DNA from: Ramazzottius varieornatus
Taxonomy: Eukaryota; Animalia; Tardigrada
DNA: 64,000 nt
Direction of reading: 5' to 3'
Assembly (NCBI GenBank): GCA_001949185.1
Contig: BDGG01000002.1
Span: 496,001 to 560,000, forward strand
Shown here: piece by piece, positions 6,649-60,815 of the stretch
How positions within the stretch are numbered: the stretch's first letter is position 1
How the letters are laid out: each line of letters opens with the position of its first letter
The notes under the pieces: model-generated
What the model saw: only the letters and a program-made list of their open reading frames with translations
Database searches by the model: none
Told to the model about the DNA's origin: nothing
Position numbers and translations under genes: made by a program

Positions 6649-9600
6649 ATGGAAGGGTGTTCGCCCGAATGTAATGAGTACGTACTCGGACTCTCAAGTT
6701 GCAAGTACGACTTCTCGTATGGATTCGTGGGCCGGGACTTTCTACCTCGTGGTTCGGGTATTGTCACCAGAGTTCCGTTGGTTCTTCAACTTGTCCATAC
6801 TCCGAAGAAGAGCAAAGGTAAACCTCGTTCTTGTTGACTGAAGAACTGGACATGCGTCTTGCCAACGCGCGGTGGGCCCAAGTTAAGTACTTTCTGCATT
6901 TATGTGGATGCAGATGGTGTGGAGGAATGGGGTCAATTTCTGCACAACCCCGGACAGAAGTTCACGGATTTTGACGAAATTCGAGGGGAGATCGACGCCC
7001 AAACGGCCGAGTTAGCTGGAAGTTCCGAGGTGAGACATGATTACAAATCGGAGCTCGGTAAACCAACTCCGTATGATGGTTTACGCAAGTGGCGCATCTT
7101 GTCGATGTTCTTGGCCGAAATCGTGCACCCCCTGGGAAAAGCGAACGTTGGCAGTCTGTTTTCCCAAGTGGCGCACGTTTATAGTGTCACTGGCCGAAAG
7201 GATGGGCCACTTGGGCAACCACTTGGGCAACTTTGTGGAGTTTGTTTGGCCAGGTCCAGAATGTTCTTGCGCTCATGCGATGCTCTGCTTTGCTAATGGA
7301 GTAGAATGACATGGAAGTCAGTCACCTTCTTTTACTTCTATCGACAGGATAAAGGTGTGGTGGACAAGCCCATCAATCTGACAATCTATTCTCCGACCGT
7401 GGTCAACATCACGCTGGTCGACCTTCCCGGAGTGGTGACGGTAAGATGGCCTTCCCAACGATGATAACCTCAAGGGGAATAGTCACCCTTGTTCGGAGGT
7501 AGCGTTGGCAGTCGAGTCACTGTACTTGTCCTTCTTACAAAGGTTCCGCTGCCGACACAGCCCAAAGATATTGAAGCGCAGGTTCGCAGTATGATCTTGG
7601 ATTATATCAGGCCGGAAAACGTCATCATTCTGGCAGTCACTCCCATCAACGCGGACATGGCTACGTCCGAAGCACTCAAATTAGCCAAAATCGTCGATCC
7701 CGAAGGTTAATTAAGTAGCAATATTCAACCAAGTTTGCTGTACGTGTACCTGACTTCAACTTGCCAGTTAAACTGGCCCTTTTTCTACGAGAACGTCTAA
7801 CAAGGCCGTGGACGGCATCAGTGTCTTCGATGTTTGTGTAGAAATATCGTAGAAAAGAAGGCTGTGCAAGTGTTTGGTACCAGTTTCGAATGGTCAAAAC
7901 TAGGGGGCGTTTTTGTTGTAGGCAAACGAACTTTGGCTGTTCTGACTAAGCTGGACCTCATGGATCCAGGGACGGACGCCAACGAGGCTATGGCAGGCCA
8001 TGTCATTCCTGTCAAGCTGGGCATCATCGGGGTGGTTAACCGATCTCAGCAAGACATCAAAGACAAGAAGGTTTGTCTGGTCGCAGCACCACCTTCTTCA
8101 GATCCGTCGTAATGTAATGCAAACTGTATGACTTGTTCGTGTAGTCAATCGAAGACTGCCTCAAGCAGGAAAAGAAGTTCTTCCTCGAGAAGTATCCTAA
8201 CTTTGCAGCAAGAAGCGGGACGCCCTTCCTAGCTTGTAAACTGAATACAGTACGCGATGTTACATATTCCTGATAGGTCTCGTCAAGAACTCGACAAGAT
8301 CGCTTTCCCAACTGGCGCACGTTTTTAGTCTTATTGGCTAGACGAATGCGCCACTTTGCCTGTAGCATTTCAGTTCAGTCAGTGGAAGACTGCGTCACTT
8401 GGAAGTCTTGTCGATTTTAGTTGTATTTCCAAGTGGCGCATGTTGTTATTGTTATTGGCTGAGCGGATGCGCCACTTTGGCAAAGTTGGACTGTTCTCCC
8501 GAGTGGCGTACGTTTACAGTGTTGTTGGTCGAGAGCGTGCGCCGAATGCAAAAACAAGGTGATGTTAACTGCCGCTTTTCCTCGTGCTCCTAGCTGTTGA
8601 TGGGGCATCTGAAGGCCCACCTGCCCAAGTACAAGGTGTTAATCAACAAGAAGATTGCCGAGCAGGAGGAACTCTTGACGGCGCTTGGCGAAGAAATCCT
8701 TCCTGAAAACAAGCATAAGATGCTACGGGAGCTCATCAACAAGGTCGTCAAGGAGTTCTGCGGACGCATTGACGGCCAAGCAATGCCCGATTTCGCTGAA
8801 GGCACTGCGGGCGATATGAAGCTGTCTGGTGGGGCCAAGATCAACCGGGACATATTCTACGGCTCCTTCAAAGAAGACCTTGATGAGATCATTCCGTTAG
8901 CTGACGTGACGCAGTTTCACATTATCCAGATGCTGCGCTCAACCGCCGTAAGTTGCCTCTTCCTCTCAAGTCAGTCCCGCGGCCACTTTTCCCTGATACA
9001 GCATAGACGAATATGCTTTGCTTGTTGCAGGGTTTACAACCGCATGTATTTGTGTCGGACGAGGTCTTCATGAAACTGGCCAGGAAGGAGGTTGGGCGTT
9101 TGAGTAAACCCAGCGAGCGCTGCGTTGAGCGCGTCCATGATGAGCTGCGGACTTTGATCGAAAAGTACGGACCGGAATGCAAGGTACGAGTATCGGTATG
9201 TTTTTGGAACAGCAACTGCTAAACTGCCAATAAGGGAACTCTTCCTTTTAGCGCGATTTCGACCGTTTTCCGCGGTGTCGTGACAAGATCATCGGCATCA
9301 CGCAAGAGTTTGTGAGCAGGACGAAGAAGGACGCACTTCTGCTCGTGAAGGACCTAGTTAACGTAAGCTTTACTTTGGCCCAAGTTCTACCCACAGAAAG
9401 TCCAACTGTGTTTCTACGTCTGACTAATCTGGTGTTCGTTCAGATTCAGACGGGGTTCATCAACACTCGCCATAAAGACTTTCAAGAAGAAGCTGCCGTC
9501 TTGTTGAGCACACAGCAACGTCGTCGACTGGAACAGGAGGAGGCCAAGAAGGAAGCCGAACACGCCAAGAAAGACTGGGTCGATGATGGCTATCATCCTA

Positions 9601-25989: not shown

Positions 25990-26039
25990 NNNNNNNNNNN
26001 NNNNNNNNNNNNNNNNNNNNNNNNNNNNNNNNNNNNNNN
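25990..26039. other. Assembly gap (50 N)
   Basis: Run of N. Confidence 1.
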
Positions 26040-28617: not shown

Positions 28618-40826
<12,209 letters not shown>

Positions 40827-43117
40827 CTTTCTTCTGAAATTAGCCAAAATATTCTGGCTAATTCCACAGCTATCTCACGCTACAGACAACTTACTTGAGG
40901 GTCTCAGGAAGTCCAAGCCAGTCGGCAGAGTTGAACAGACGCAACCACAGCTCGTGCGAGGGCTCTTCAGCAGCAATTGATGCAGACCTACTGAACGAGC
41001 GACTCGAGCTTCCAACCAACCTCACTCACACACACACGGCCTTCCTCCCACCAACGGCCGTCCAGGCGTCTGTAGTAAATACACTCTAGGTCAGGCTGCT
41101 CGACATGTCTTTGGTTGAAGTTGAACGGTCCACCGTAAGAGTGAAGGAACACCTGAAATACACAAAGCGGTTAAAATCAGTCAGTACCCCGTTTCATTCG
41201 CGCATTTTGGTCAGCAATCTAACCAGTAACTAGTACGCCGAATGACGTCACCGCGCCACTTGAACAGATAACGGCAAAATATGGAGTCCGAAACCTGCCG
41301 AATTACGGGCTTCGTACTGACGAGCGAGGGATCAAAACATACATAAATTCAGCGAGAAGTATTCCTGGATAAGGTCCTACTGAAAGTCCAGCGGTGATTG
41401 ATAGTCCCAGGGGTAATATCGCCAGTGATTTGAAGGCTGCCAAAATGTCAGTCTGTTATCGGACGTTCTGCTTATCCCGCTGATTGTACGACGATAGAAG
41501 TGCCTCGAGACTGCCAAACTGCTCGTCGTGCCGGGACCTACACTGAATGTCCAAAGCTTCGACTGAAAGTGCCACCTACAACTATATGGCATGAGATCGT
41601 GACGACCAAGAGAAGCGAGCTGAAGCTCTTTGGCGTTCGTGCCGAGGAAAAACGATTCAACGATGACTGCTTGACTTGAGCGAGTACGTGGGCCAAAAGT
41701 GTACCCTCTTGCCAACTATCAATCAAATAGGCAAACCGGTTTTAGGATGAGTACCACCGGAAACGCGCTTTTGGTTGGTCGACAGGAAACTACATGTGCG
41801 TTTTAGCTGGTTGCAGAAACGAAGCTCCGCCTTGGAACCGCCCTTTCACCACCAGTAACAGGAGTGACTCAACACACGGGAACCTGAAAAAATGCGCGGG
41901 CCCTAGGGGATAATTTTCGGTACCAGGCACTACTGTACTAGCTGTTTGACTTGTTTTGGTTTTCAATATATTTTCGATGATCATGATCTGATCTTCTTCA
42001 GGACTTCTTCCAGTCGTTATGTCTTTGGCTGTGCCTCTCTGGGCTCATGAGCTTGGAAGATTGAGGATTCCCGTAAGTTCGACTGTAACTCCCAATCTCT
42101 CATATTCAGGCGCGAGGCGAGGTTCTACTGTGACTTTACTGGGGTGTGGTTTTGCAGGAGCAGAGTTTGTGCAGAATCTTTTACGGCTGTGCCGCGGAAT
42201 GACCCGTCGGAAGCGCCATAACAAAGCTTTGATTCGGGGTCGTTCACCGGAAGAGATGGTAAACAAGTCCTGTTGTACGGGTATGGTGAAATGTATACGG
42301 GAGGAATGGACAGCTGGACAGGAAAACAGGCTAACAAGAACGAAGGGAGGCGAGAGTCCCATCAGTGACGTCGTCGTGTGAATATCGATCGACGGAATGT
42401 CAAGTCAAAGGTTCAGTGGACCACTGGCCAGTGAGTCCAGGGGAATTTGTCCCACTTTCCGGGATGAGGGGCAGCTGGCTTGGATCGACAGGGAAGGAAG
42501 CGTGTTTGTATGCCTTCTGTCCATAATTACGCTTGACTGGACGCGCTTTCAACCTTGCATGTTTTTCTCTCGTTTTAGCCCCAGGACTGCTCGTCTCGGA
42601 AGTGTGAAACATTCGCAAGGAAAACAAGAAGAGGAGGTCGCAGTCTCGTGGGGGGAATATGGGCAGGGGAAAAAGAATATGTGCACCGAAAGTAAGCTCA
42701 TGAGAAATTATGTGGAATATTAATTATGAATTCCAAGCAGCTGCAGCATCTGCACGGAATGACCTAGTAAACCAGAAACAACAACTGGTTTGTCCGATCG
42801 ATCTGCTCGTCCTCCGAACGGACATACGCTGTGGTGGACTCGCGGTACCATGCCCACAGGGAAGTAAGAGCAGGATCTCTTCAACACGAAAATGAGCAGA
42901 CCAGTATAATTATAGTAGGACTGGGAGTTCGGCAGGCAAACTCTCGACCAGTTCACTTTTCCAACTGGCGCACGCTTTCAGCGGTGCGCCGTCTAGGAAA
43001 CAGTCAAACTCGCGAAGATCGTTTTCCCAAGTGGCGCAGGCATCCGGCTGATAACAAAGCGAAGGTGCGCCACTTGGGAAGACAATCTCGGTCAAGATTC
43101 TTTCCCGATCGAGCTCC

Positions 43118-46100
43118 TTGTACGGATGGAGTACTCTTATCGATATTCGAACTCTGGCCTTACGAGTCTCTCTCCTTGGAACTTTGAAAGCCTTACCTGC
43201 GATTTTCAGAAAAAGAAGGTACACGATAAAGGCAAAATGGTCCGGGCATCGGATTGGCGTTTCATATGACCAAGTATTCCACCAGGAGATTTAGTCACGC
43301 TTGGGAAGATGAATCAAGTCCAGAAAATAGGAACGACAGTAAGTTCCGAGGTTTGCTCATGACAATCCCGTAAACTCCACTTGTTGTTCAGTATAAAACT
43401 CCGTGCTCCGTTCTCCGCAGAGAAAATATCGAGATGGATGCTGCGAGCAGGAAATGAACCTTCGCCTGAAATGCAGAGCTGCTGCAACTGCATGCTGCGC
43501 AAGTGACATTCAGCACTCACCAAGCAGCCAACGAGTCGATCGCGAAACAGCACATGGCGTATGTAAGTTTGTAATGCATGACTGCAGATAGTTTGCAGAG
43601 GCGGCGCCGCAGAGCCTGCGTCAGTGAACCTACGGAGCTGCTCGTTTCCAGTACGAAGTGCACCGAATGGCTTTTGCTCAAACTTTACCATACTTTAGCA
43701 CTTTAGTATAGCTGCATCGCATTTCGTCGAAATGATTTTGACTGCTGTTGTGCTCAAGGTATTTGCTTGTAAGTTGTAACACTGCAGGACAAGGATAGAC
43801 TGTAGCGACACCTGGTCGGGGAGGAACATGGGTGTGGGTCCCGGAGAACTCTGCAACGGAAACTGCAACCGTTAAAGTAGCCAGTACCAGCGCGGCGGGA
43901 CAAGAGGAAGTGAGCACCCTTTCACCCATTATAGTCACGCAAGCCTACGTACAAAAATTTTGTACAAGATCATTTATGAAATGGGAATTCGACCAGCGAA
44001 GCCGGCAAGATTGTTTTCCCAAGTGGCGCGCCCTTGCAGGTTTATTTACTGCAGACATGCACCTTCAGGAAGAACAAGATTTCGTACTGTATTTGTTTCC
44101 GTCGCATAATGTTGAACTTATATTTACTTATCATAGCGTACTTCTGAAATTGGTATTGTTTTCAACAGGCAAATAAGCTCCGACGAAGATATGGGTAGAT
44201 TGATGAAACGCTACTACATAGTGTTACATGGTCGACTAATCGTGACCGTGGCCGGCCAAGATCAACGGAATCCATAGCTTCATTCTCTCGCGTCGGTCCA
44301 GTGTGATTGATCGTCATCTTAATTGAGCAAAGTTCCAGCTGAAGGAGGACGAAGCTTGGTGAACCTCCCCGGCATGAACAGCGTCCAGAGTAGGTCACAT
44401 GCTAAAGTCACTTGAGGCTACATTATGTTCTTCGATGATAATCGGCATCAAGGCGAACAAAGTCCTCAAGATTGGATGTCCAAATGGCGCTGCTTGACGG
44501 TCAACAACGCTGGAAAAGTTTTTTTGCGGACCTGAGCTCCCAATTAACGATCTTAAGATGAGTTTTGTTTGCAGGGAAACGCTACTGCATCGAGCGGATC
44601 TTCGCGCTGTTGACCTGAACCTATGCAAAATGTGCGGCATTCTTGCGATTCCTTCCCCCGGCAAATCTGACAGGGATGTCGACCACGCTTTGATTGACAA
44701 GTCAGTCATGCTGACCACGTTGAATGTTCGGGCCAGGAAGTTCGCCGATGAGGAAGACGTTCAGATGGTTCACTTGTATCGTAAGACTCCAACGCAGTTG
44801 GCTGATTTTGCAACAGTGCTACATAGTATTATTCATTGATTAATGATATACGATTATATTCACCAATTTTGGAAATTTTCAGACTCGCTGCAGTCTCTCT
44901 AGTAAACTTTCTGACCGTAGATTTTCCGATCAGAAGTTACTTGAGATGGTTATCTTAACTGGCTCCTAGTCGCTCTCGGTATAGACAGCTAGTTCCTCGG
45001 AACGATCGAAAACCCGCAACTTCCGGTCGGTGGCACGGCCTTGATACGGGGTATCACTATAGCCAGGGCCGTGCCAGCGACAGGAAGTTGCTTGTTTTCG
45101 GCGGTTCCGAGAACGGGATGTGGAATCAAACCTGTCACTCATGGCAGTCTGTGCATATAAGTTTTGACCATATTTTAGACTTGTCAAGAAGTGGCGTAAA
45201 TGGCTCTGCAAGGTCCCATTGTTTGTCTGTGTCATGTCCTAACCCAAAGTGCCAGATGATAATCTTTTCTTCTTTTTTCACAGAAGACCGCAATCCCGAG
45301 GACGATAAAAGCAGTAAGGAAGCAGTTGCAGTTCTTGATTGATTCAGATGTTGATAAACTGGAAGCTCGACAAAGAGGTCCGACAAGGTTGTTTTCCCAA
45401 GTGGCGCACGTTTGCATTCATATCGCCTCAGAGCGTGTGTCGCAAGAGAACGATATTGCTGAGTTTTACAGTTGCTCAACCTATAATACAGTGCTTTTGT
45501 TGACCGGCAGGTTCCTTTGAGAGGACAGAGCAGCTGAACTTCAACTGGCTCCGACAGTCGGGTCACGAAGTGCCCACATTATCCGATTTAAGTAAGCAGC
45601 CGAAATAATCAGAAGAACTCTTTAAAGGGAACGGCAAAGACTGACTTTCACCTATCTCCCGCATACGTCCATTCTGTTATTTCCCATAGACCATTCTAGT
45701 AACGTGGCGTCGACCACCTGGGCCTGCGTCGACCACCTGGATAGCAGCAAGAGCCGCAACTTCTTCACTAGTTTGCCGTACGCCACCGGCCTGGGCTTTT
45801 TCGGCAACCACTGCGAGCTGGTTGGTTATCGAAGCTTCCTTTCATTCGTCGATTATTCACATCTTCTAGGGCCTGACGTTTTGCGGAGCGTCCGCCGAGT
45901 GGAAAAGGTTTTGGCCGAAGGCGCCGGCAAGTTTGGCGCTCTTTTCACGTCGCTAACGTCGATAAGCGACCGCAACTACGTGCCTGTGGCTGCCATGCAG
46001 TCTATCTTGAAACGATGTTCGATGTTTGGGCTAAGTTTCTTTTGACTGTATGACTGGACTGATCGGAGGAAAGCACGTCTCCTGAGGACCACAGTTGGAA

Positions 46101-46702
46101 AAGCAAGTGACCATCAAACAGTTCTCCGTCCATGATGGCCCTATGGCCCCACACGCGGCTACGATGGCTTCCCTCCAACCGTAGCAACTCCGACCACAAT
46201 GTTTACTTCAAAAAAGTAGAAACGAAATATTGAAGAATATTGCACAGAAGTATAAGCTCACCAAACAAAGCAGAGAAAAATCACTTGCTCAAGTGGCGCA
46301 CGGTTTCATGTTGTTAGCTGTAAGCCTGCGCCGCTTGAAGACATGAGCTTGTCCAGTTTGATCGTTTTCCCCAGTGGCGCACGTCCACAGTATCACTGAC
46401 CGAAGAAGTGCGTCACTTGGGCAAATCTTTTCGAGGTTGTCTGCCGGACTTACAAGTAACGGAAAAAATATGAAATGAGATGTAATTGCAAGAGTCGGCG
46501 TATGGTGGCATAGTGGTTGATGCTACGAAGAACCACGACAACTTGTGCCTGGGGGTCCACCGTAAAATGGACATGACTGATGAAAGTGAAGTCTCCGCTC
46601 GACGCTTTGTCGCCGCGAACCCATTACCCAACCGAAGACTTCATACTGAGCCCCAACGATATGATATACGGCGTCGAACAAGGCAGATTACGTTCCTCCT
46701 AA
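43118..46702 (+). pseudogene. Decayed tandem paralog of the Slo/BK-like channel
   Basis: Colinear remnants: pore LYGWSTLIDIRTLALRVSLLG (43118-43180); RADLRAVDLNLCKMC...LIDKSVMLTTLNVRA (from 44575, +1 frameshift at exon start); micro-exon EDRNPEDDKS (about 45284); RQSGHEVPTLSDL (about 45511); FTSLPYATG and EKVLAEGAG (45690-45930); QVTIKQFSVHDGPMAPHA (about 46095); ESAYGG...LCLGVHRKMD...RRFVAANP with a frameshift before EDFILSP. Damaged splice sites (gcaa acceptor, non-GT donors). Confidence 0.85.
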
Positions 46703-47398
46703 AGAAAACGCGCTGAGACAAGCTGTCCATGATGATGATAAGTTTGGAGACGAGTGCGCTGAGGAAAAAGAAAATCCGGAACATTGGCGGGAGTGACAGA
46801 GGACACCCATTACAGAAACCCGTGCGACCTCTTCTTTCACAGCTTTGTTGGCTAGCAAAAGACGATCGAGAAAATTTGCTCAATACCTCGGGTGAAATTA
46901 TCTAGAAGCTGGAGGCGTAAGAAGCCTAACACACGAAAACACGCAGTAACAATCATCAGACAGTGGTTAGCCTTCTGCTGGGTAGCGACATGGATAGCTT
47001 CGTAAACTACCACAGAGTCTTTCGATTAGGGTAAGCCAGGTCGTTCGATCGCTGTCAAGCTCAGTTGGCGAAGACCAGCCCTTTGTTCGTGAAGAACAAA
47101 AGGTACGTAATAGCCCAGCGGTGAAATAAAGTACAACCTCCGGCCATCAATAACTCCGAGTCCAACGTTACCGGCTTACCACCGTCAGCATCCTCCACCG
47201 AACATGGCTACACGAAAGAGTTTCCGTCTACCATACAAACGGTATAATTCCATCACGTTGTCTTTCATACACCTAACGCATCCATAGAGCACTTCGGTGA
47301 CTCTGGTTGGATGACGGCTAGAAGGTCAACGTTATCCCTGTATTGAAGTTATGTAGGAATATTCTTCAGTGTGTATCGGAATATTTGCGGACGGAAAA

Positions 47399-50300
47399 AT
47401 GAGTAACGCGGCAGCCTACGATAACCTACCAACACCACCTCCATCCGCTGATGGCGCTGCTACCGTTATCCCTGCCCAGAGTGTCATCACCGAGTTGTAC
47501 CAAGCGACGGTGGCCTTGCTGGAGACGAGTACACTACAGCCCAACGTGTTTGTCAACAAGTGGGGAGCTGTACCATGCCAGGCCGTAGGTCTCCGCTCCT
47601 ACGTCGTCTACTACTTCTTCGCCGCCTTGATCATCCCGGTGCTGGCCCTCCTCTTCGTCTTAGGCGCCTGGCTCAAGCGGAAGTTGACCAAGAACTGGCT
47701 GCGCTTGAGACAGCGGGGCGAGTACGAGAGTCTGGAGGACGCGGAAGATGTCCTGGGGACACACAATGTCCAGCCTCACCTGGACAAGATCAAGGCGCTG
47801 GTCATTGCAGCCGAGGAACGACACGCTATATGGAACTGGCTGGGCGCAGCTTCGACCTCGCATACAAAAATCGGTGAAAGGGTGATGATCGGCGGTATCC
47901 TGTGCGCCGCGGTATCCTTTCTCATCTACCTGGTGTCCACTTCGGGCGATATTGTTAGCGTAGAAATGTGCGGGACAATGCCCAATGCCGCACAGTTCGT
48001 TGATTGGCTAGCCAACTTTTACTTATTGTGTTACTTTGTCATTCGGCTGATTGGGACTGAGAAAAAGATGAAGGTGCTGGTCAGCGGCTACTCTATCGTT
48101 GACTATTTCTGTATTCCTGCCGTCTTGATTAGCGTCTTTCAAGACCGATACTTCACCGGTAATTTTGAACCGGACTGGTTTTCGAATTGTTGTCCCCCTT
48201 TAACCTTGGCAAACAAACTCGACCAGATCTTACTTCCGAGTGGCGCCACTTGAAAAATCTATCTGGTCGAGTCTGATTGTTCTGCCAAATGGCGCATGCT
48301 TCCAGTGTTATTGGCTGGAAGCGTGCGTCACTGAGAAAAGCGATCGGGTTGACTTCCTTCGGTTGGGCCCTCATAAACGTTTCGTTTATGTTTGACAGGT
48401 TTCACCTTCCTTCGGATCTACAACTTCATGTGGCTTGTCGAGGTCCTGTCCAAGCGCGGCGTCTTGCGAACACCCAACGCTGTCAAGTTGACCCATCTGT
48501 TGATCCTGGTCGTTGTGACGCTCTTTTCCGCCGCCGGTTTCCTCCATCTAGTGGAGAACAAGGGGGACTTCTATCCGCTGACCGCGGTGTACAATGGCCA
48601 GCATGTCAACTTTTGGCGTTGCTTCCTGTACCTGTACGGTAAAGTGACGCTGATCGACCTCAGTGGCATGGCGGTCCGTAGTGTCCTGGGCAAGTTCGTC
48701 ATCTACGGCTTCCAGCTGATGGCTTTGGTAAGGATGCCACCCCAAACTCAGACATACCTTCTGATTTCGGAGATTGATTTTTGGCCTTATAGGGTATTAT
48801 TGGTCGATCCATCCCTCAAATTATCGCCCTTTTGAGAATTACACCGGAATATGACAAAGATTACATCACGCCCGAGCGCTTCTTGTAAGTCACGGCGAAA
48901 ATCAAAGTTAAATTTGTGACGGACTCTTGAATCCTCGACAGGCACATCGTCATTTCCGGACACATCACCGAATCGTCCGTCAAAGCTTTCCTTCGAGAGT
49001 TTTATCATCCCGATCGCGATATCAGCCAGCATTTCAAAATCGTCATTCTCGGAGAGTAAGTCAGAGTCGTATGTAAAGGACCTTTTCCAAGTGGCGCACG
49101 GCTCCAGGCAACACTACCGTAAAAATGCGCCACCTGAGAAAACAACCAAGCTCGCCATGATCCTTTTCCCAACTGGCGCACGCTGTCACCCTATGCCACT
49201 GTCAATGTGCGCCACTTGGATGAAGTTATCTTGTCGAAAATCTTTGCCAAGCCCCAAATATCTCGATGGAACATTTGAACCTTGATTTTTGTTGTTGATT
49301 AGTAAGCCGCCCGACGAAGCCATCGATCGGATTCTGAAGCAGTACTTCAACCGAGCCGACTACCGGCGCGGCTCCATCATGAGCTTGCTGGATCTCAACC
49401 GCGTCAAGGTCTTTGAAGCAGCGGCCACCGTGCTGGTCGCGGACAAAGCGACAGCGGACTCTGATTCCGAAGACGCCGTCAATATCATGCGTGTCGTCTC
49501 CATCAAGAACTTCAAGCCCGACGCTCGAGTAATCGTGCAAATTCTGCAGTATCATAACAAGGTACTGCGCTAACTAGCGCTTCAATACTTCTTTTCGAGT
49601 CTCATTAGGCACCAACTAGACTTTCTATACCTGCAGGCATACCTCCAAAACATTCCATCGTGGAATATCCAAGCGGGAGACATTGTCATCTGTATTGCAG
49701 AACTGCGCTTGGGGCTGTTGGCTCAAAGCTGCTACGCTCCTGGCTTCTCCACGCTGATGGCCAACTTTTTCACTACCCGATCGTATAGCGACAAAATCCG
49801 AGTACGTCAAAACAAAAGCCCAGCCTTTTCAGTTTCAGATGAAACGAAAAAAAATATAGGGAGAAAAAATCGACGAGATCGGTTGCTCAAATGGCTCAAA
49901 TTTCGCTCGTCAGAATTGGGTTTTCCAGTTGACGCACGCTTGTAGCAGAAAACACTGTTAGCGTGCGTCACTTGGGAAAACCAGAAAACTTGAGTACGAG
50001 TAGCAATAGATCCTTTCGCCTAGTGGCACACTCTAGCGACTAATAATGCCGGAAAGGTGCACCGCGTGTGAGAATGATCTTCTCAAATTTATTCGCTGGA
50101 CTCTTCAGTTATTTTATTTTTTCCAGAACTGTCAGGTGAATTTTGCCTAATGTTTGTTTCAGTATGGCGAGGTGTGGCTGCAAGACTACGCGCGAGGTAC
50201 TTCTCTGGAAATGTACGCTCGAGCAATGTCGGACGCCTTTGCTGGCATGACTTTTACGCAGGCCTGCGAATTCTGCTACCTCCGTCTAAAGATTGTTCTT

Positions 50301-53300
50301 GTGGCCATCAAGACCGACGCCAACAATGTGGCCACTATGCCACAAGTCAACCCAAGCCACGCTATAATAGCCCCTGCCTCCATCGGTTATTTCATCGCCG
50401 ATTCCACCGAAGAAGTCGACCGAGCCAGCTTCTACTGCGCCGTCTGTCATCGCGATATCGACGACCCATCCCACATCAAACGCTGTGCTTGTAATGGTAA
50501 GACTCGCCACGAGGATGTGACCAACCAAACCCGGCTAAAAACTGCCACTTCCGGTCATGCTTTCACCATGTTTAATCAGTAATCAAACAGTGGTTTTGCT
50601 CTAAAGTATATAAACAGGGGCCAAACCCAAACACTTACCAAGTTTTTGCAACCTTGGTTCTAACAGGCAAGGTCAAGGAGGAGAGTGGTCTAATGCGGCT
50701 GTTTGTCACACCCAAAGAGGAGCTGACAGCGGCAGATCTTGGTGTGGCCGTCGACGCTTTCAACATGGAAAGCAAAATTTGGTCTTTCATCAAGCGATAT
50801 CCGGCATCGTAAGCACCGAACAATGGTTTGCGGCTTTCTGTCACGTGGTATTTCTGAATGCGGTTAAACTACCTTTCAGACCAGCACGCTCTGTGGTTGA
50901 GCGGTCCGGAGTCGATGACGTAGCGCAACGTGGTGGTCAAGACGGTGAAGAGGACCCCAATGGAGTACACAGACGGCGCCCCAGCTCTGACCAGGTCATT
51001 TACGACTCAACGGGTATGCTCAGTCCTCCTTTCCGATATACATAGTAGCAAGACAGAATCGGCGAAAAACAGGAAAACCGGAAAACTCGACAAGACGTGT
51101 GTTTGCCGCAGTGGCGCACTTTTAGTTCAGTGTTGAGAGGTGGAAAAAATGCGTCACTTTTGAAAAGTGGCCTGGTTCATGTGTGTTTATCCAGCTGTGA
51201 AAATGTTGCTTTTTACTGCAGGATGTTTGCTTTTTTGGATAATGTTGCTTTTTTTCTCTGCAGGTATGTTTTATTGGTGTCCGGGTCGGCCCATCGAGTC
51301 GGTGGTCAAGAGTCGTCAGGAGGCGGCCAAGGCGCAGTTTAGCGGTCATATCGTCATCTGCATCCTAGCTACTCCCGGCTCGCAGATCGTCGGCCTCCAC
51401 AGCTTCATCTTGCCACTTCGCGCCAGTTTCTTCAAAGAGGAATCCCTTCGTGAGATCGTTATTCTCAGCGACCACGCCTTCATGCGTAAAGAATGGTCAT
51501 ATATTATGAATTTGCCCAAGATAACCGTAGTGCGAGTAAGGACAATCATCTTCTTCTTATCCAATAAGTCTTTGCGGTTGTATTCGTTTGATTGTTTGAT
51601 TGGTCCTCGACAGGGAACGGCGCTCAATCGTGCCGACTTACGTGCAGTCATGCTCAACACGTGCAAGATGTGCGTCATCCTGGGTTCGCCGGCCACCGGC
51701 ACGCAGATGCAGAATGTCGATAATGCCTTGATTGACCGATCAGTTATCCTTGCCACCTTGAATGTCAGGGCCATGAGGTTCTCCGACGAGGTGGATCTGG
51801 AAATACACGATTCTGACGGTTTGTGCTTGGTCACTGTTCCTCTTATCTATCCCCAAGTGGCGCACTTCTCATTGCTCTTGGCTAGGTGCTTGCGCCACTT
51901 GGAAGTACGATCTGGTCCATTTTGATTGTCTTGTCAAGTGGCGCACTCTCTCCATGCTACAGTCTCTAAGTGTGCGCCACTTTGGAAGAGGATCTTGTTG
52001 AACCTGACATATGTGTTAGAACGAGTCCCATTGTGTTTGTATCTCTGCAGCGACGAGTGACACGGCTTCTATTTCCGAAACAAGCAGTAAGCTGATCGGG
52101 TCTGATCGTTGCACTTAATCTTCTGGTGAACAAGCATGTTGTCGGTTGAAGGTATGTATCGACAACGGAAGTCTCTGAAGACCCGCGCAAGGCAGACAGG
52201 TTACGAAGTGCCACTGGTGACGGATTTATGTAAGTTCTACGCGACATAGTTATCGGGATGGTTGGCGTTGACGTATTTAGTTGAACTCTTTTGTAGTGCG
52301 AGAGTCAAATGCCCAGTTCTTAGATCAGGATGATGACGATAAGCCGGGCACCGAGTTCTACATGACACAACCCTACACTTGTGGGCGAGCATTTTCGAGT
52401 ACCGTCCTCGACTTGCTCAGCATTACCTCCTTCTTCAACCCCGTCATTGTCAACGTCTTCCGCACCATGATCTTTGGTACACCCAAAAATGGCGTAGATA
52501 TCGTGACGAGAAACACTGATCGTGTCATAACAGATATGTTCCGTTATGGGACGGATTGGTTGACCATGCTGACTTGGTTAAATAGGGTACATATCAGTGT
52601 TTGCTGTCACGATTACAGTTGCGCGCCACCCTCGTTGTTTCTGGCTCTTGTCCTGCCCACGTTGCTGAAATTTTGTGGGTTTTTACATCAGGTGGGGCTT
52701 CTCTGGAGCTCGAAAAGATTCTTGCCGAAGGCGCAGGTAACTTTGTTTGCGGTCAAGTAAACGTCAAAGCAAATGAATTAGAACTCGAAAAGCTCAGATT
52801 TATAAGTGGCGCACACTGTCGGCCAAAAACGCTGCAAACATGCGCCACTGAGAAAACGAAACAAGCTCGACAAGGTCGCTTTCCCAGATGGCGCACGCAC
52901 CCGGTCGAAAATATCGACCACGTGCGTCTCTTGGGGAAACAATCTAGTCGAGTTTATTTGCCGAGCTCCTAATTTCCATGTGAAGAAGAGAAAATCAAAC
53001 CAGGTTGTTAACTTGTCCACTTGCACTGAATGCACTTTCAGGGTTGATTGGTGGGTCGAATATTTCTCAGCCCGCCCAGCTGAAAGGCCAAGTTATCGTC
53101 AATCAGTTCCCGATAGCGAACGGGCCACTGTCAGTTCACGCTGTAAGACGCATAATATCATTTTTGAATTTGGTCTTCGGTACTTAGACTGGAATGACGG
53201 GTTGATTTGCTTTGGTTGGCAGGAATCAACGTACGGCGGACTTTTTATCGATGCGCTAGTGAGCTTTGGCAAGTTATGTTTGGGCGTGTACCGGAAGATG

Positions 53301-53519
53301 GATCCGACAGATGATAAATTAAGAGCAGCCAAGCGTTTCGTAATCACAAACCCGCCAGAAGATTTCATTCTAGACCCAACAGACTGGATTTTCAGTTTGG
53401 ATAGGCCTGATGTCCTTGAAATGAGAGACCCGAATAAGGGCCTCGCCGCCTTTTTAAGTGGCAAATCCCCGACAGCGGCGAAAGATGACTTGGAAGACAA
53501 ACTATTCTTGGACGATTAA
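47399..53519 (+). CDS. slo-like: Divergent Slo1/BK (KCNMA1)-family channel subunit, 17 exons, intact frame, non-canonical pore
   Basis: Exons 47399-48158, 48399-48727, 48793-48884, 48942-49055, 49303-49561, 49637-49801, 50163-50496, 50667-50808, 50880-51013, 51264-51535, 51614-51818, 52051-52086, 52152-52229, 52297-52476, 52692-52756, 53071-53142, 53223-53519. Motifs: [92 protein letters not shown], Ca bowl [19 protein letters not shown]. Confidence 0.92.
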
Positions 53520-54747
53520 TCTCTGTCGACTGTAATGTGTTAGCATTAATTTTCATCCCTCACGTCCATTTGTATTCGCATTTTATTACCTCTCTGTTCT
53601 TTGGTGCATAATTTGTAAAAGTCAAAGTTGTTCGGGGCAAACTGAAATTTGGAACTCTAGCGTAAAAAATTCGACAAGATTCCTTCTCAATGTGACGCAT
53701 CTCTACAGCCAATAACACCGAGAAAGTGCGTTACTTGAGAAAATGGAACACCGACGTGATTTTTTACCAGGCGATGCACTCTGTCAGCCAAGAGCACTGT
53801 ATACATGCGCCACTTGAAGATCAATAATCGAGGTTGTCTGCCGAAGTCTCACGTGTCGGCAAATTTTGTCTGGTCGATCTGATGGAGTGGTGTCTCTGCG
53901 GCAAGAAATAGTGTAATTCATTGATCGAAACGATGGTGAAAATTGCGGCTTCTTTCGTCCTCGCCGTTTCTTTTGCGTCATTCTCTCCGTTGGATATCAG
54001 TCCCGTATGCACCAGCATATTGTACGTGATTGCACTGCGCATTTTTAATGTTTTCCTAAGTTAGCGAATGCCTCGCTTCGAGCTATGGATCAATCAAAGC
54101 ACGATCAAGTTCTTCCCGCTTACCAAAGTCCACAGTCACCTTCTAGAGGAAATCACGAAGCAAATATGATACACCGGAAGTTCGACCATAAATCCCTCTC
54201 CAGTACTTCACCTTCGGGAAAAATTTCCCCACAAGGGTCATACAATAAATATTGACCAACATCCATATCCGTTAAGGTATATTGACGCTGGCGGGCCACT
54301 GAGCTGTCAAGTGGCGCAGGCACGTCCAACAGTGCGTAGTCCTAGTCAAGACCTGTCTTTGTTCCATTATCCACTTGGGCCCTTTGGTGCAGGCTAAGCA
54401 CGAATATTAGGATACTAGACCCGAACAATATTCCGAGGCATTAGCTCAGTCCCAGCCCACTCCCTTCGGCCCCATCTCTTTCATCCGCGAGACGTGTTAT
54501 TAGCTAATCGAAAGTAGGGTCCCTGGCTGGCTTCCGCCGGCCCGATCAATCCCGATAAAAGACAGTTCTCTCACCTTTTCTTGACATACGCACGCACTGG
54601 CCTTTTCTCATACCCACGGGAACCACCCGGATTTGCATCCCTTCTTCTCCTAAATAAAATATTGGGTGCGGTGCGCGATACTGCGGGAGGGTTGGAGATT
54701 TTTCTGAACAGTCGTCGAACCGACTCGAACCGGCCTTCAGTATCAAC

Positions 54748-60329: not shown

Positions 60330-60815
60330 TAAGCTCTGTTTCATCTACCAATGGGTGGTACTTTTAGCCTCCTCGCCAACCCATCCAACATTTTTTATGG
60401 ATTCTTTTACGGCCATAGTTCTTAGTTCGCAAGGCGGGTCAACTTGGCCGTTTTAGAAAGTCAAGATCAGCTCTTGATCATCCCGCTACGGGGGAAGATC
60501 AACTGATAGGATCTCTGATCCTCAGTATGTACGATCCTCCACACAGTCGTACGCGTGAATCCGTCCCGGGTAGTGAGCACGCGGCAGACTGGCCAATCAN
60601 NNNNNNNNNNNNNNNNNNNNNNNNNNNNNNNNNNNNNNNNNNNNNNNNNTCCCCCGTAGCGGGATGATCGAAAGCTGATCTTAACTTTCTAAAACGGCCA
60701 AGTTGACCCGCCTTGCGAACTAAAAACTATGGCCGTAAAAGAATCCATAAAAAATGTTAGATGGGTTGGCCAGGAGGCTAAAAGTACCACCCATCGGTAG
60801 ATGAAACAGAGCTTA
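60330..60815. mobile_element. Foldback/TIR element with inverted repeats of about 165 bp spanning a 50-N gap
   Basis: 60330-60495 (taagctctgtttcatctacc...cccgctacggggga) is the near-identical reverse complement of 60650-60815. TA at both ends; gap at 60600-60649. Confidence 0.8.

Follow-up and report, generated by a model that had tools for sequence, protein, structure and literature searches.

A tardigrade clade of Slo1-derived proteins in which a conserved motif stands in place of the K+ selectivity filter

We analysed a stretch of 64,000 nucleotides from the tardigrade Ramazzottius varieornatus (assembly GCA_001949185.1, contig BDGG01000002.1, positions 496,001 to 560,000; hereafter the window, with coordinates counted from its first letter) and found in it a gene for a Slo1/BK-type protein in which the segment aligned to the K+ selectivity filter TVGYGD reads LIDLSG. 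The evidence presented below shows that the pore is encoded at 48399-48727 on the forward strand, in an exon of a gene that is intact, under selection and predicted to encode a Slo1-derived, RCK-gated channel subunit, and, judged from sequence, the replaced filter is a real, selected and new variant of the Slo1 family. An earlier, sequence-only reading of this DNA had presented it as a lone odd Slo gene; the oddity stands, but the gene proved to be one member of a multi-paralogue clade shared by three tardigrade genera. The proteins of this clade probably carry something other than a K+-selective current.

The pore exon and its filter position

Coding exon 2 (48399-48727, +) encodes S4, S5, the turret, the pore helix, the filter position and the first half of S6 of a Slo1/BK-type protein. 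Its frame (48401-48727, +; phase-1 start) holds 109 codons that translate without a stop, and its borders, an AG acceptor at 48399 and a GT donor at 48727, are the best-scoring splice sites. In a phmmer search of all PDB chains with this exon, Slo1/BK structures alone were significant, with human Slo1 (hSlo1) as the top match (E 3.8e-12) ahead of those of Aplysia (2.7e-11) and Drosophila (1.4e-8); no Pfam family was found in the exon, even at E 1. The exon aligns to hSlo1 residues 207-307 without gaps over the pore (posterior 9), and, counting from the alignment anchor (query residue 3 = hSlo1 F208), hSlo1 T287-V288-G289-Y290-G291-D292 falls on L-I-D-L-S-G (48650-48667, +). The ungapped substitution that had been read from the letters, with an Asp at the first filter glycine (G289) and a Lys in the pore helix (at T284), is thus upheld by alignment to the human protein, and the K+ signature of Slo1 is absent from the window gene as it is across the clade. 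The conserved ‘YG[KR]’ of the pore helix was considered as a shifted remnant of GYGD and rejected, since compensating indels would be needed; that alignment is also ruled out by the flanking FWxC and LG[KR] anchors, which stand at the exact Slo1 spacing, and by the gapless HMMER alignment. Furthermore, no G[YFL]G exon in a K+-pore context was found in any frame of 46500-54000, and there is therefore no alternative canonical pore exon, in agreement with the earlier reading, which had seen none in the flanking introns.

The replacement extends beyond the filter position. Throughout the clade the pore helix is remodelled to FW[RK]CFLYxYG[RK] and the filter position reads L-[IL]-D-L-S-G; S6 is likewise rewritten and yet conserved (IIYxFQxLALGI..[KR]xIPQI), with G310-G311 replaced by Met/Leu-Ala. 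No clade member departs from the Asp, Leu and Ser at the filter position or from the Y, Y, G and C in the pore helix, and the 19-residue block formed by the pore helix and the replaced filter (48611-48667, +) is identical in the R. varieornatus, Hypsibius exemplaris and Paramacrobiotus metropolitanus orthologues.

Distribution, phylogeny and selection

The 55.8-Mb, 200-contig R. varieornatus assembly (in which the window is C2:496001-560000) was searched with the pore exon and with Pfam BK_channel_a as queries, and 12 Slo-like loci with a BK_channel_a domain were recovered. They comprise one true slowpoke orthologue (C6:425k, with the canonical pore STVGYGD), five L[IL]DLS-type loci (the window gene, TLIDLSG; C6:1570k and C6:88k, both TLLDLSG; C1:3698k, TLLDLSR; C1:5530k, SMLDLSY), one TLGSAD-type locus (C2:279k, ATLGSAD) and five that are divergent GYG or unresolved, several of these further loci having divergent GYG pores. 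No clear Slo2 was recognised among the 12, and one paralogous locus is identical to the R. varieornatus protein GAV00740.1.

Outside this genome, when 1.84 billion representative proteins were searched exhaustively with the pore exon in phmmer, 58 matched at E <=1e-3; among these the odd motif was confined to tardigrade proteins and to Logan/ENA fragments nearly identical to them (P0003, P0004, P0005, P0009, P0010 and P0018), and matches from other phyla carried GYG or GFG without exception. All named relatives with the odd motif belong to Ramazzottius, Hypsibius or Paramacrobiotus; word searches limited by region brought in further full-length members, all of them from H. exemplaris and P. 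metropolitanus, and a search of the ESM Atlas gave ordinary Slo/K+-channel clusters only. The odd-filter clade is thus apparently restricted to tardigrades. The LIDLSG-type motif, for which the sequence-only reading had recommended a search in relatives, is present in orthologues from both other genera, namely P0068 of H. exemplaris (74% identical to the window gene) and P0067 of P. metropolitanus (68.6% identical), compared over about 970 and 1120 columns, respectively. Four further loci of the genome and two other genera have this motif as well, which rules out chance and assembly error as its source.

A phylogeny of 26 rows and 976 columns was inferred with IQ-TREE (LG+C20+F+G4 with posterior mean site frequencies; supports given as ultrafast bootstrap / SH-like approximate likelihood ratio test), leaving out as long branches P0054, the Macrostomum protein P0053 and the loci C1:9329k, C1:6443k, C13:1549k and C1:3205k; the tree is unrooted and holds no Slo2 row. 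The 12 L[IL]DLS proteins form one clade (100/100), which was also recovered (98) in a quick tree that included the long-branch rows. Within it we identified three orthogroups (97/95, 98/97 and 100/99), each with Ramazzottius, Hypsibius and Paramacrobiotus members, the rest of the clade being one Ramazzottius pair and the divergent Paramacrobiotus copy P0002. The true slowpoke orthologue of the genome (C6:425k) groups with arthropod Slo1 (96/97), so that the window gene, placed in its own fully supported clade, is not the slowpoke/KCNMA1 orthologue; the T[LI]GS[AP]D lineage forms a separate clade (100/100). Because every one of the three orthogroups has members in each genus, both the change of filter and the duplications must be older than the divergence of the genera from one another. 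On this topology, the clade is shown to have arisen by duplication of a Slo1-type gene, with at least three orthogroups in place before the Ramazzottius/Hypsibius-Paramacrobiotus divergence, and each orthogroup is shown to have kept the new motif ever since. The affinity to Slo1 proposed earlier is clear from the presence of S0, the Ca2+ bowl and CxxCH and from comparison with the PDB, in which P0067 matched Slo1 at 1.6e-228, Slo3 at 3.5e-115 and Slo2 at ~1e-20. Membership of Slo2 is contradicted by this far weaker match and by the presence of S0 and of a Ca2+ bowl, and even the most divergent local lineage (C13:1549k) is nearer to Slo1 than to Slo2.

The pattern of sequence change points to selection on the pore itself. 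Mean pairwise identity per column in the clade is 0.48 overall and 0.78 for the 20-mer starting at FWRC, which makes the latter the second most conserved block of the protein, behind the RCK1 motif around PGFSTLMAN; no more than 14 of 1005 19-residue windows scored above the pore block. At the 19 pore codons, the five paralogues of the genome differ by 6-10 synonymous and 2-7 non-synonymous codon differences (10 versus 2 between the window gene and C6:1570k); these are given as codon-difference counts because synonymous divergence (dS) by the Nei-Gojobori method was saturated, and undefined for most pairs, in the paralogue pore exons. As read from these patterns, the new motif is under strong purifying selection. 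Pore conservation and codon pattern together cannot be explained by assembly error, a recent inactivating change or relaxed constraint, and in the choice between an intact selected gene on the one hand and relaxed selection or assembly error on the other, the codon counts, the conservation and the recurrence of the motif settle the matter in favour of the former.

Gene structure, gating ring and neighbouring DNA

The window gene was modelled with 16 coding exons, all on the forward strand and all joined by GT-AG introns, which run from an ATG at 47399 to a stop ending at 53519 and encode 1142 residues without an internal stop. For this model all frame-preserving, stop-free GT/GC-AG pairs between conserved blocks were enumerated, with tardigrade proteins as guides; the result is collinear with the annotated orthologue proteins at every well-conserved junction, the borders of linker exons 7-9 and 11-12 being less certain. 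The joined spliced protein was used for local pairwise alignment and for the tree, and database searches were made with single exons or with database proteins. The gene is intact, in frame and stop-free, as had been claimed, but it has 16 exons in the present model and not the 17 counted before, a discrepancy that is immaterial because it is confined to poorly conserved linker exons.

The architecture of the encoded protein is that of Slo1, with S0 and S1-S6. Exon 1 (47399-48158; open reading frame from 47369, first in-frame ATG at 47399, GT donor) encodes the N-terminus and S0-S3 and matches Slo1 structures at E 5e-10 to 1e-7 in phmmer, covering hSlo1 residues 11-205 (human protein, E 1e-7), with exon 2 taking over at residue 207. 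The countercharges of S2 and S3 (D153, R167 and D186 equivalents, all in exon 1) are kept, as is the equivalent of E219. The S4 remnant FTFLRIYNF (48401-48427), at the start of exon 2, has kept the equivalent of R210 alone among the three arginines R207, R210 and R213: R207 is lost (Thr in the window gene) and R213 is Asn in every clade member. Exon 3 (48793-48884) provides the second half of S6 and the C-linker, with E321 changed to Gln, E324 to Ala and S317 to Arg.

A tandem-RCK gating ring follows, in which exons of the window gene match PF22614 and PF03493. RCK1 begins in exon 4 (48942-49055), which contains EFYHPD (48997-49014); here, as in the window-gene orthogroup, D362 is replaced by Glu and H365 and D367 are kept. 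It continues in exon 5 (49303-49561; Slo-like_RCK, PF22614, E 5e-14) and exon 6 (49637-49801; RCK1/BK_channel_a, placed by splice sites and orthologue alignment). Exon 7 (50163-50553; less certain at its 3' border) carries BK_channel_a (PF03493, E 1e-10) and CAVCH at 50436-50450, an instance of the CxxCH motif that is kept in all clade members. The linker between RCK1 and RCK2 is formed by exon 8 (50730-50808, with less certain borders) and exon 9 (50973-51013, ending in YDSTG), RCK2 by exon 10 (51264-51535; PF22614, E 3e-11) and exon 11 (51614-51822). They are followed by exon 12 (52135-52229), exon 13 (52297-52476), which holds the Ca2+ bowl at 52314-52355 with the equivalents of D895 and D897 kept, exon 14 (52692-52736), exon 15 (53042-53142) and exon 16 (53223-53519), which contains the Slowpoke_C end and the stop codon (53517-53519). 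The gating ring of clade members is still recognised by Pfam (Slo-like_RCK twice, BK_channel_a and Slowpoke_C); in P0067, PF22614 (two stretches), PF03493 and PF21014 all exceed the Pfam cut-offs.

With its Ca2+ bowl and the RCK1 Asp367 equivalent, the window gene possesses the Ca2+-sensing parts with which the sequence-only reading had credited it. The Mg2+ site is not preserved (N172 is replaced by Glu, E374 by Lys, with Lys or Arg in the clade, and E399 by Asp). In P0002, the divergent TLIDLSG-type protein of P. metropolitanus (1283 residues), the Ca2+ bowl is lost (YLDLYDRSPRLVLE); as it is kept in the window-gene orthogroup, Ca2+ sensing is not uniform across the clade.

Directly upstream of the window gene lies a decayed tandem paralogue (43115-46681, +), interrupted by stops and frame changes. 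What can still be recognised is a pore remnant (SLYGWSTLIDIRTLALRVSLLG, 43115-43183) together with pieces of RCK2 and the C-terminus (44255-44767, 45740-46157 and 46492-46681); N-terminal exons of this copy were not found. Among the other paralogues, L018, L019 and L020 have an extra intron between FLHLV and EN.GD (S5-turret) that is missing from the window gene and from C6:1570k (L017), the latter having an intron after the filter instead; intron positions therefore vary among the paralogues. The TLGSAD-type locus (L024) extends over C2:277600-279500 on the reverse strand. The annotation joins each of the orthologues of C6:1570k in P. metropolitanus (P0065, 1872 residues) and H. exemplaris (P0066, 1844 residues) to an upstream protein with a SURF1 domain (PF02104), which may reflect either a genuine fusion or a conserved neighbour that the annotators ran together with the channel gene. 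A very divergent relative in P. metropolitanus (P0054 / P0061, 1745-1749 residues) reads FLYGKLVLLDVTST at its pore and is extended at the C-terminus by a long unrelated stretch; its branch length is 4.6 and its placement is unsure.

The window as a whole is eukaryotic DNA of ~48% GC with short introns and contains two assembly gaps (50-base N runs at 25990-26039 and 60600-60649). A short repeat with CCAAGTGGCGCA occurs in it in 68 copies at <=1 mismatch (0.33 expected), usually as inverted pairs ~39 bp apart and often in tandem (e.g. 93-187, 7164-7214 and 29436-29568), as an abundant element resembling a miniature inverted-repeat transposable element or a palindrome. It is also present in introns of the window gene (48285, 49087-49219, 49964 and 51853-51984) and yields many spurious open reading frames (‘FPKWR’, ‘FSQVAH’).

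Possible function, rival explanations and known channels

The glycines of a K+ filter take backbone angles that are disfavoured by L-residues, and a channel in which either of them is replaced loses its selectivity for K+ (Shaker signature mutants and weaver GIRK2 are examples). Because both filter glycines are replaced in the clade (by Asp and Ser), we infer that the canonical four-site carbonyl filter cannot form and that the pore is not classically K+-selective. Considering the protein as a whole, we find it somewhat probable that it works as a Ca2+-opened, weakly voltage-dependent tetramer with a restructured, non-K+-selective pore. In such a mechanism the subunits would assemble as a tetramer, Ca2+ binding to the gating ring would open the channel (with a weak dependence on voltage), and conduction would proceed through the restructured pore, where the invariant Asp may form a four-carboxylate ring similar to the acidic filter residues of NaK and CNG; the outcome would be a cation conductance activated by Ca2+ and not selective for K+, which might be permeable to Ca2+ or blocked by divalent ions. 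More tentatively, the clade may constitute an old multi-gene tardigrade class in which the K+ filter of a BK scaffold was swapped for the fixed loop T-L-[IL]-D-L-S-G, and which would pass Na+/Ca2+ or other non-K+ species under Ca2+ control. The pattern T-L-x-acid-hydrophobic-S is reminiscent of the filters with an acidic ring in bacterial NaV and CaV-like channels.

Several observations weigh against a cation-conducting pore of this kind. The acidic ring of the inner mouth (E321/E324) is lost, with Gln at E321 and a variable residue at E324 in the clade, and the conserved Arg/Lys at the S317 position would disfavour cation flow if it were pore-facing. Moreover, Ion_trans (PF00520) and Ion_trans_2 (PF07885) are no longer detected in the clade members P0067 and P0060 (E 0.01), which places the membrane domain far from ordinary channels; the canonical arthropod Slo1 P0032 and the TIGSPD-type P0020 match both models. 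A low-confidence AlphaFold2 monomer of the 109-residue pore exon (14-row alignment, pLDDT 69.7) draws the filter as a helix extension, and Foldseek with this model returned Slo1 first at E 0.06 or worse, with a root-mean-square deviation of ~12 Å, so that the model is uninformative as to how the filter is shaped. A complex prediction with four copies of P0067 residues 383-520 (S4-S6) had a score of 0.19 and a mark of 0.32, which speaks neither for assembly nor against it. Finally, a structural role without conduction would likewise be compatible with so strongly conserved a motif.

Such a role, in which the protein would be a non-conducting subunit (a silent modulator of a GYG-bearing Slo, or a membrane-anchored Ca2+ sensor or scaffold, with the motif serving assembly), we regard as rather unlikely. 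It would accommodate the loss of both filter glycines, the failure of the generic ion-channel Pfam models and the good preservation of the gating ring and its Ca2+ sites, and GYG-bearing Slo paralogues of the same genome would offer possible partners. Against it, few parts of the protein are as well conserved as the pore helix, the filter position and the S6 lining, and these changed together clade-wide, for which a dead pore has no need, and five such genes are present as compared to one true Slo1. The silent Kv (voltage-gated K+ channel) subunits known to us keep GYG, and a tetramer containing even one subunit without GYG would no longer be K+-selective.

The clade-conserved charge changes (Arg/Lys at S317, E321 to Gln, Lys/Arg at T284 and an Arg after the motif) raise the question of a different ion class, in which an electropositive inner mouth and basic filter flanks would make the channel anion-preferring or otherwise unlike cation channels. 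The invariant Asp at the filter position speaks against this, as does the fact that the side-chain orientation is not fixed by any reliable model; to our knowledge, no protein of the K+-channel fold is an anion channel, and we consider the proposal quite improbable. Least credible, to the point of being very hard to sustain, is an artefact or a dying gene (an assembly error, a pseudogene, or an exon replaced by a canonical GYG exon in transcripts). The decayed copy directly upstream lends it some colour; against it stand a 1142-residue frame open over 16 GT-AG exons, a gene without a GYG exon, the motif in four other loci and in annotated proteins of two other genera, and a pattern of change typical of purifying selection.

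With regard to the literature, a full-text search for tardigrade BK/slowpoke/Slo1 channels or their selectivity filter found no paper on odd-filter proteins, and the statement that no Slo subfamily with this filter has been described is borne out in the searchable literature. Duplication of a calcium-activated potassium channel in both tardigrade genomes has been reported, with a proposed role in anhydrobiosis signalling cited, in one sentence that makes no mention of the pore (Yoshida et al. 2017, PMC5531438). The expansion is thus on record as a count, and the filter replacement appears to be undescribed in the literature searched. The clade is a BK-derived lineage that dropped the K+ signature and has since held a new motif fixed, along with its rewritten pore helix and S6, while retaining the Ca2+-sensing gating ring. 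Few motifs in biology vary as little as the GYG signature, and most animals have a single gene of the textbook BK family. We argue that the clade offers a natural and directly testable case of how a K+ pore may come to serve another function, for which the window gene and its annotated Hypsibius and Paramacrobiotus orthologues are ready constructs, and that it marks an expansion, specific to this lineage, of genes for excitability or Ca2+ signalling in animals noted for surviving extreme stress. The automatic name ‘calcium-activated potassium channel’ is probably wrong about the ion. Non-K+ conduction, if true, would amount to a natural filter replacement in a channel with six transmembrane segments and RCK domains, and may be tied to tardigrade-specific physiology.

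Among known systems, the PDB family that matches best by a wide margin is Slo1/BK (KCNMA1, Drosophila slowpoke, C. elegans SLO-1), which shares with the window gene S0 and six transmembrane segments, the tandem RCK, the Ca2+ bowl, Asp367 and CxxCH; the window gene differs from it in LIDLSG, in the rewritten pore helix and S6, and in the loss of R207, R213, the Mg2+ site and the E321/E324 ring. Slo3 (KCNU1), the second-best PDB family, is comparable in that it, too, arose by duplication of Slo1 in one lineage, has a changed filter (GFG) and is less selective for K+, but, unlike the clade, it keeps both glycines and stays a K+ channel, and in the tree it is a vertebrate lineage inside canonical Slo1. 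The nearest model for the working of the clade protein may be found in NaK (TVGDG) and CNG (TIGET), which have the same pore architecture and combine a degenerate signature and an acidic filter side chain with non-selective cation and Ca2+ permeation; in contrast to the clade, they keep at least the first glycine and are unrelated in the rest of the protein. In weaver GIRK2 (G156S in GYG) and the Shaker signature mutants, replacement of a glycine abolishes K+ selectivity and admits Na+/Ca2+; these are deleterious single changes, whereas in the clade the whole motif was replaced and then conserved. The closest parallel within tardigrades is the T[LI]GS[AP]D lineage (C2:279k, P0015 of H. exemplaris and P0020 of P. 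metropolitanus), which is likewise Slo1-derived, occurs in the same three genera and has a non-GYG filter, but which differs from the clade in keeping the Thr, the first Gly and the final Asp, and in its persisting match to Ion_trans_2.

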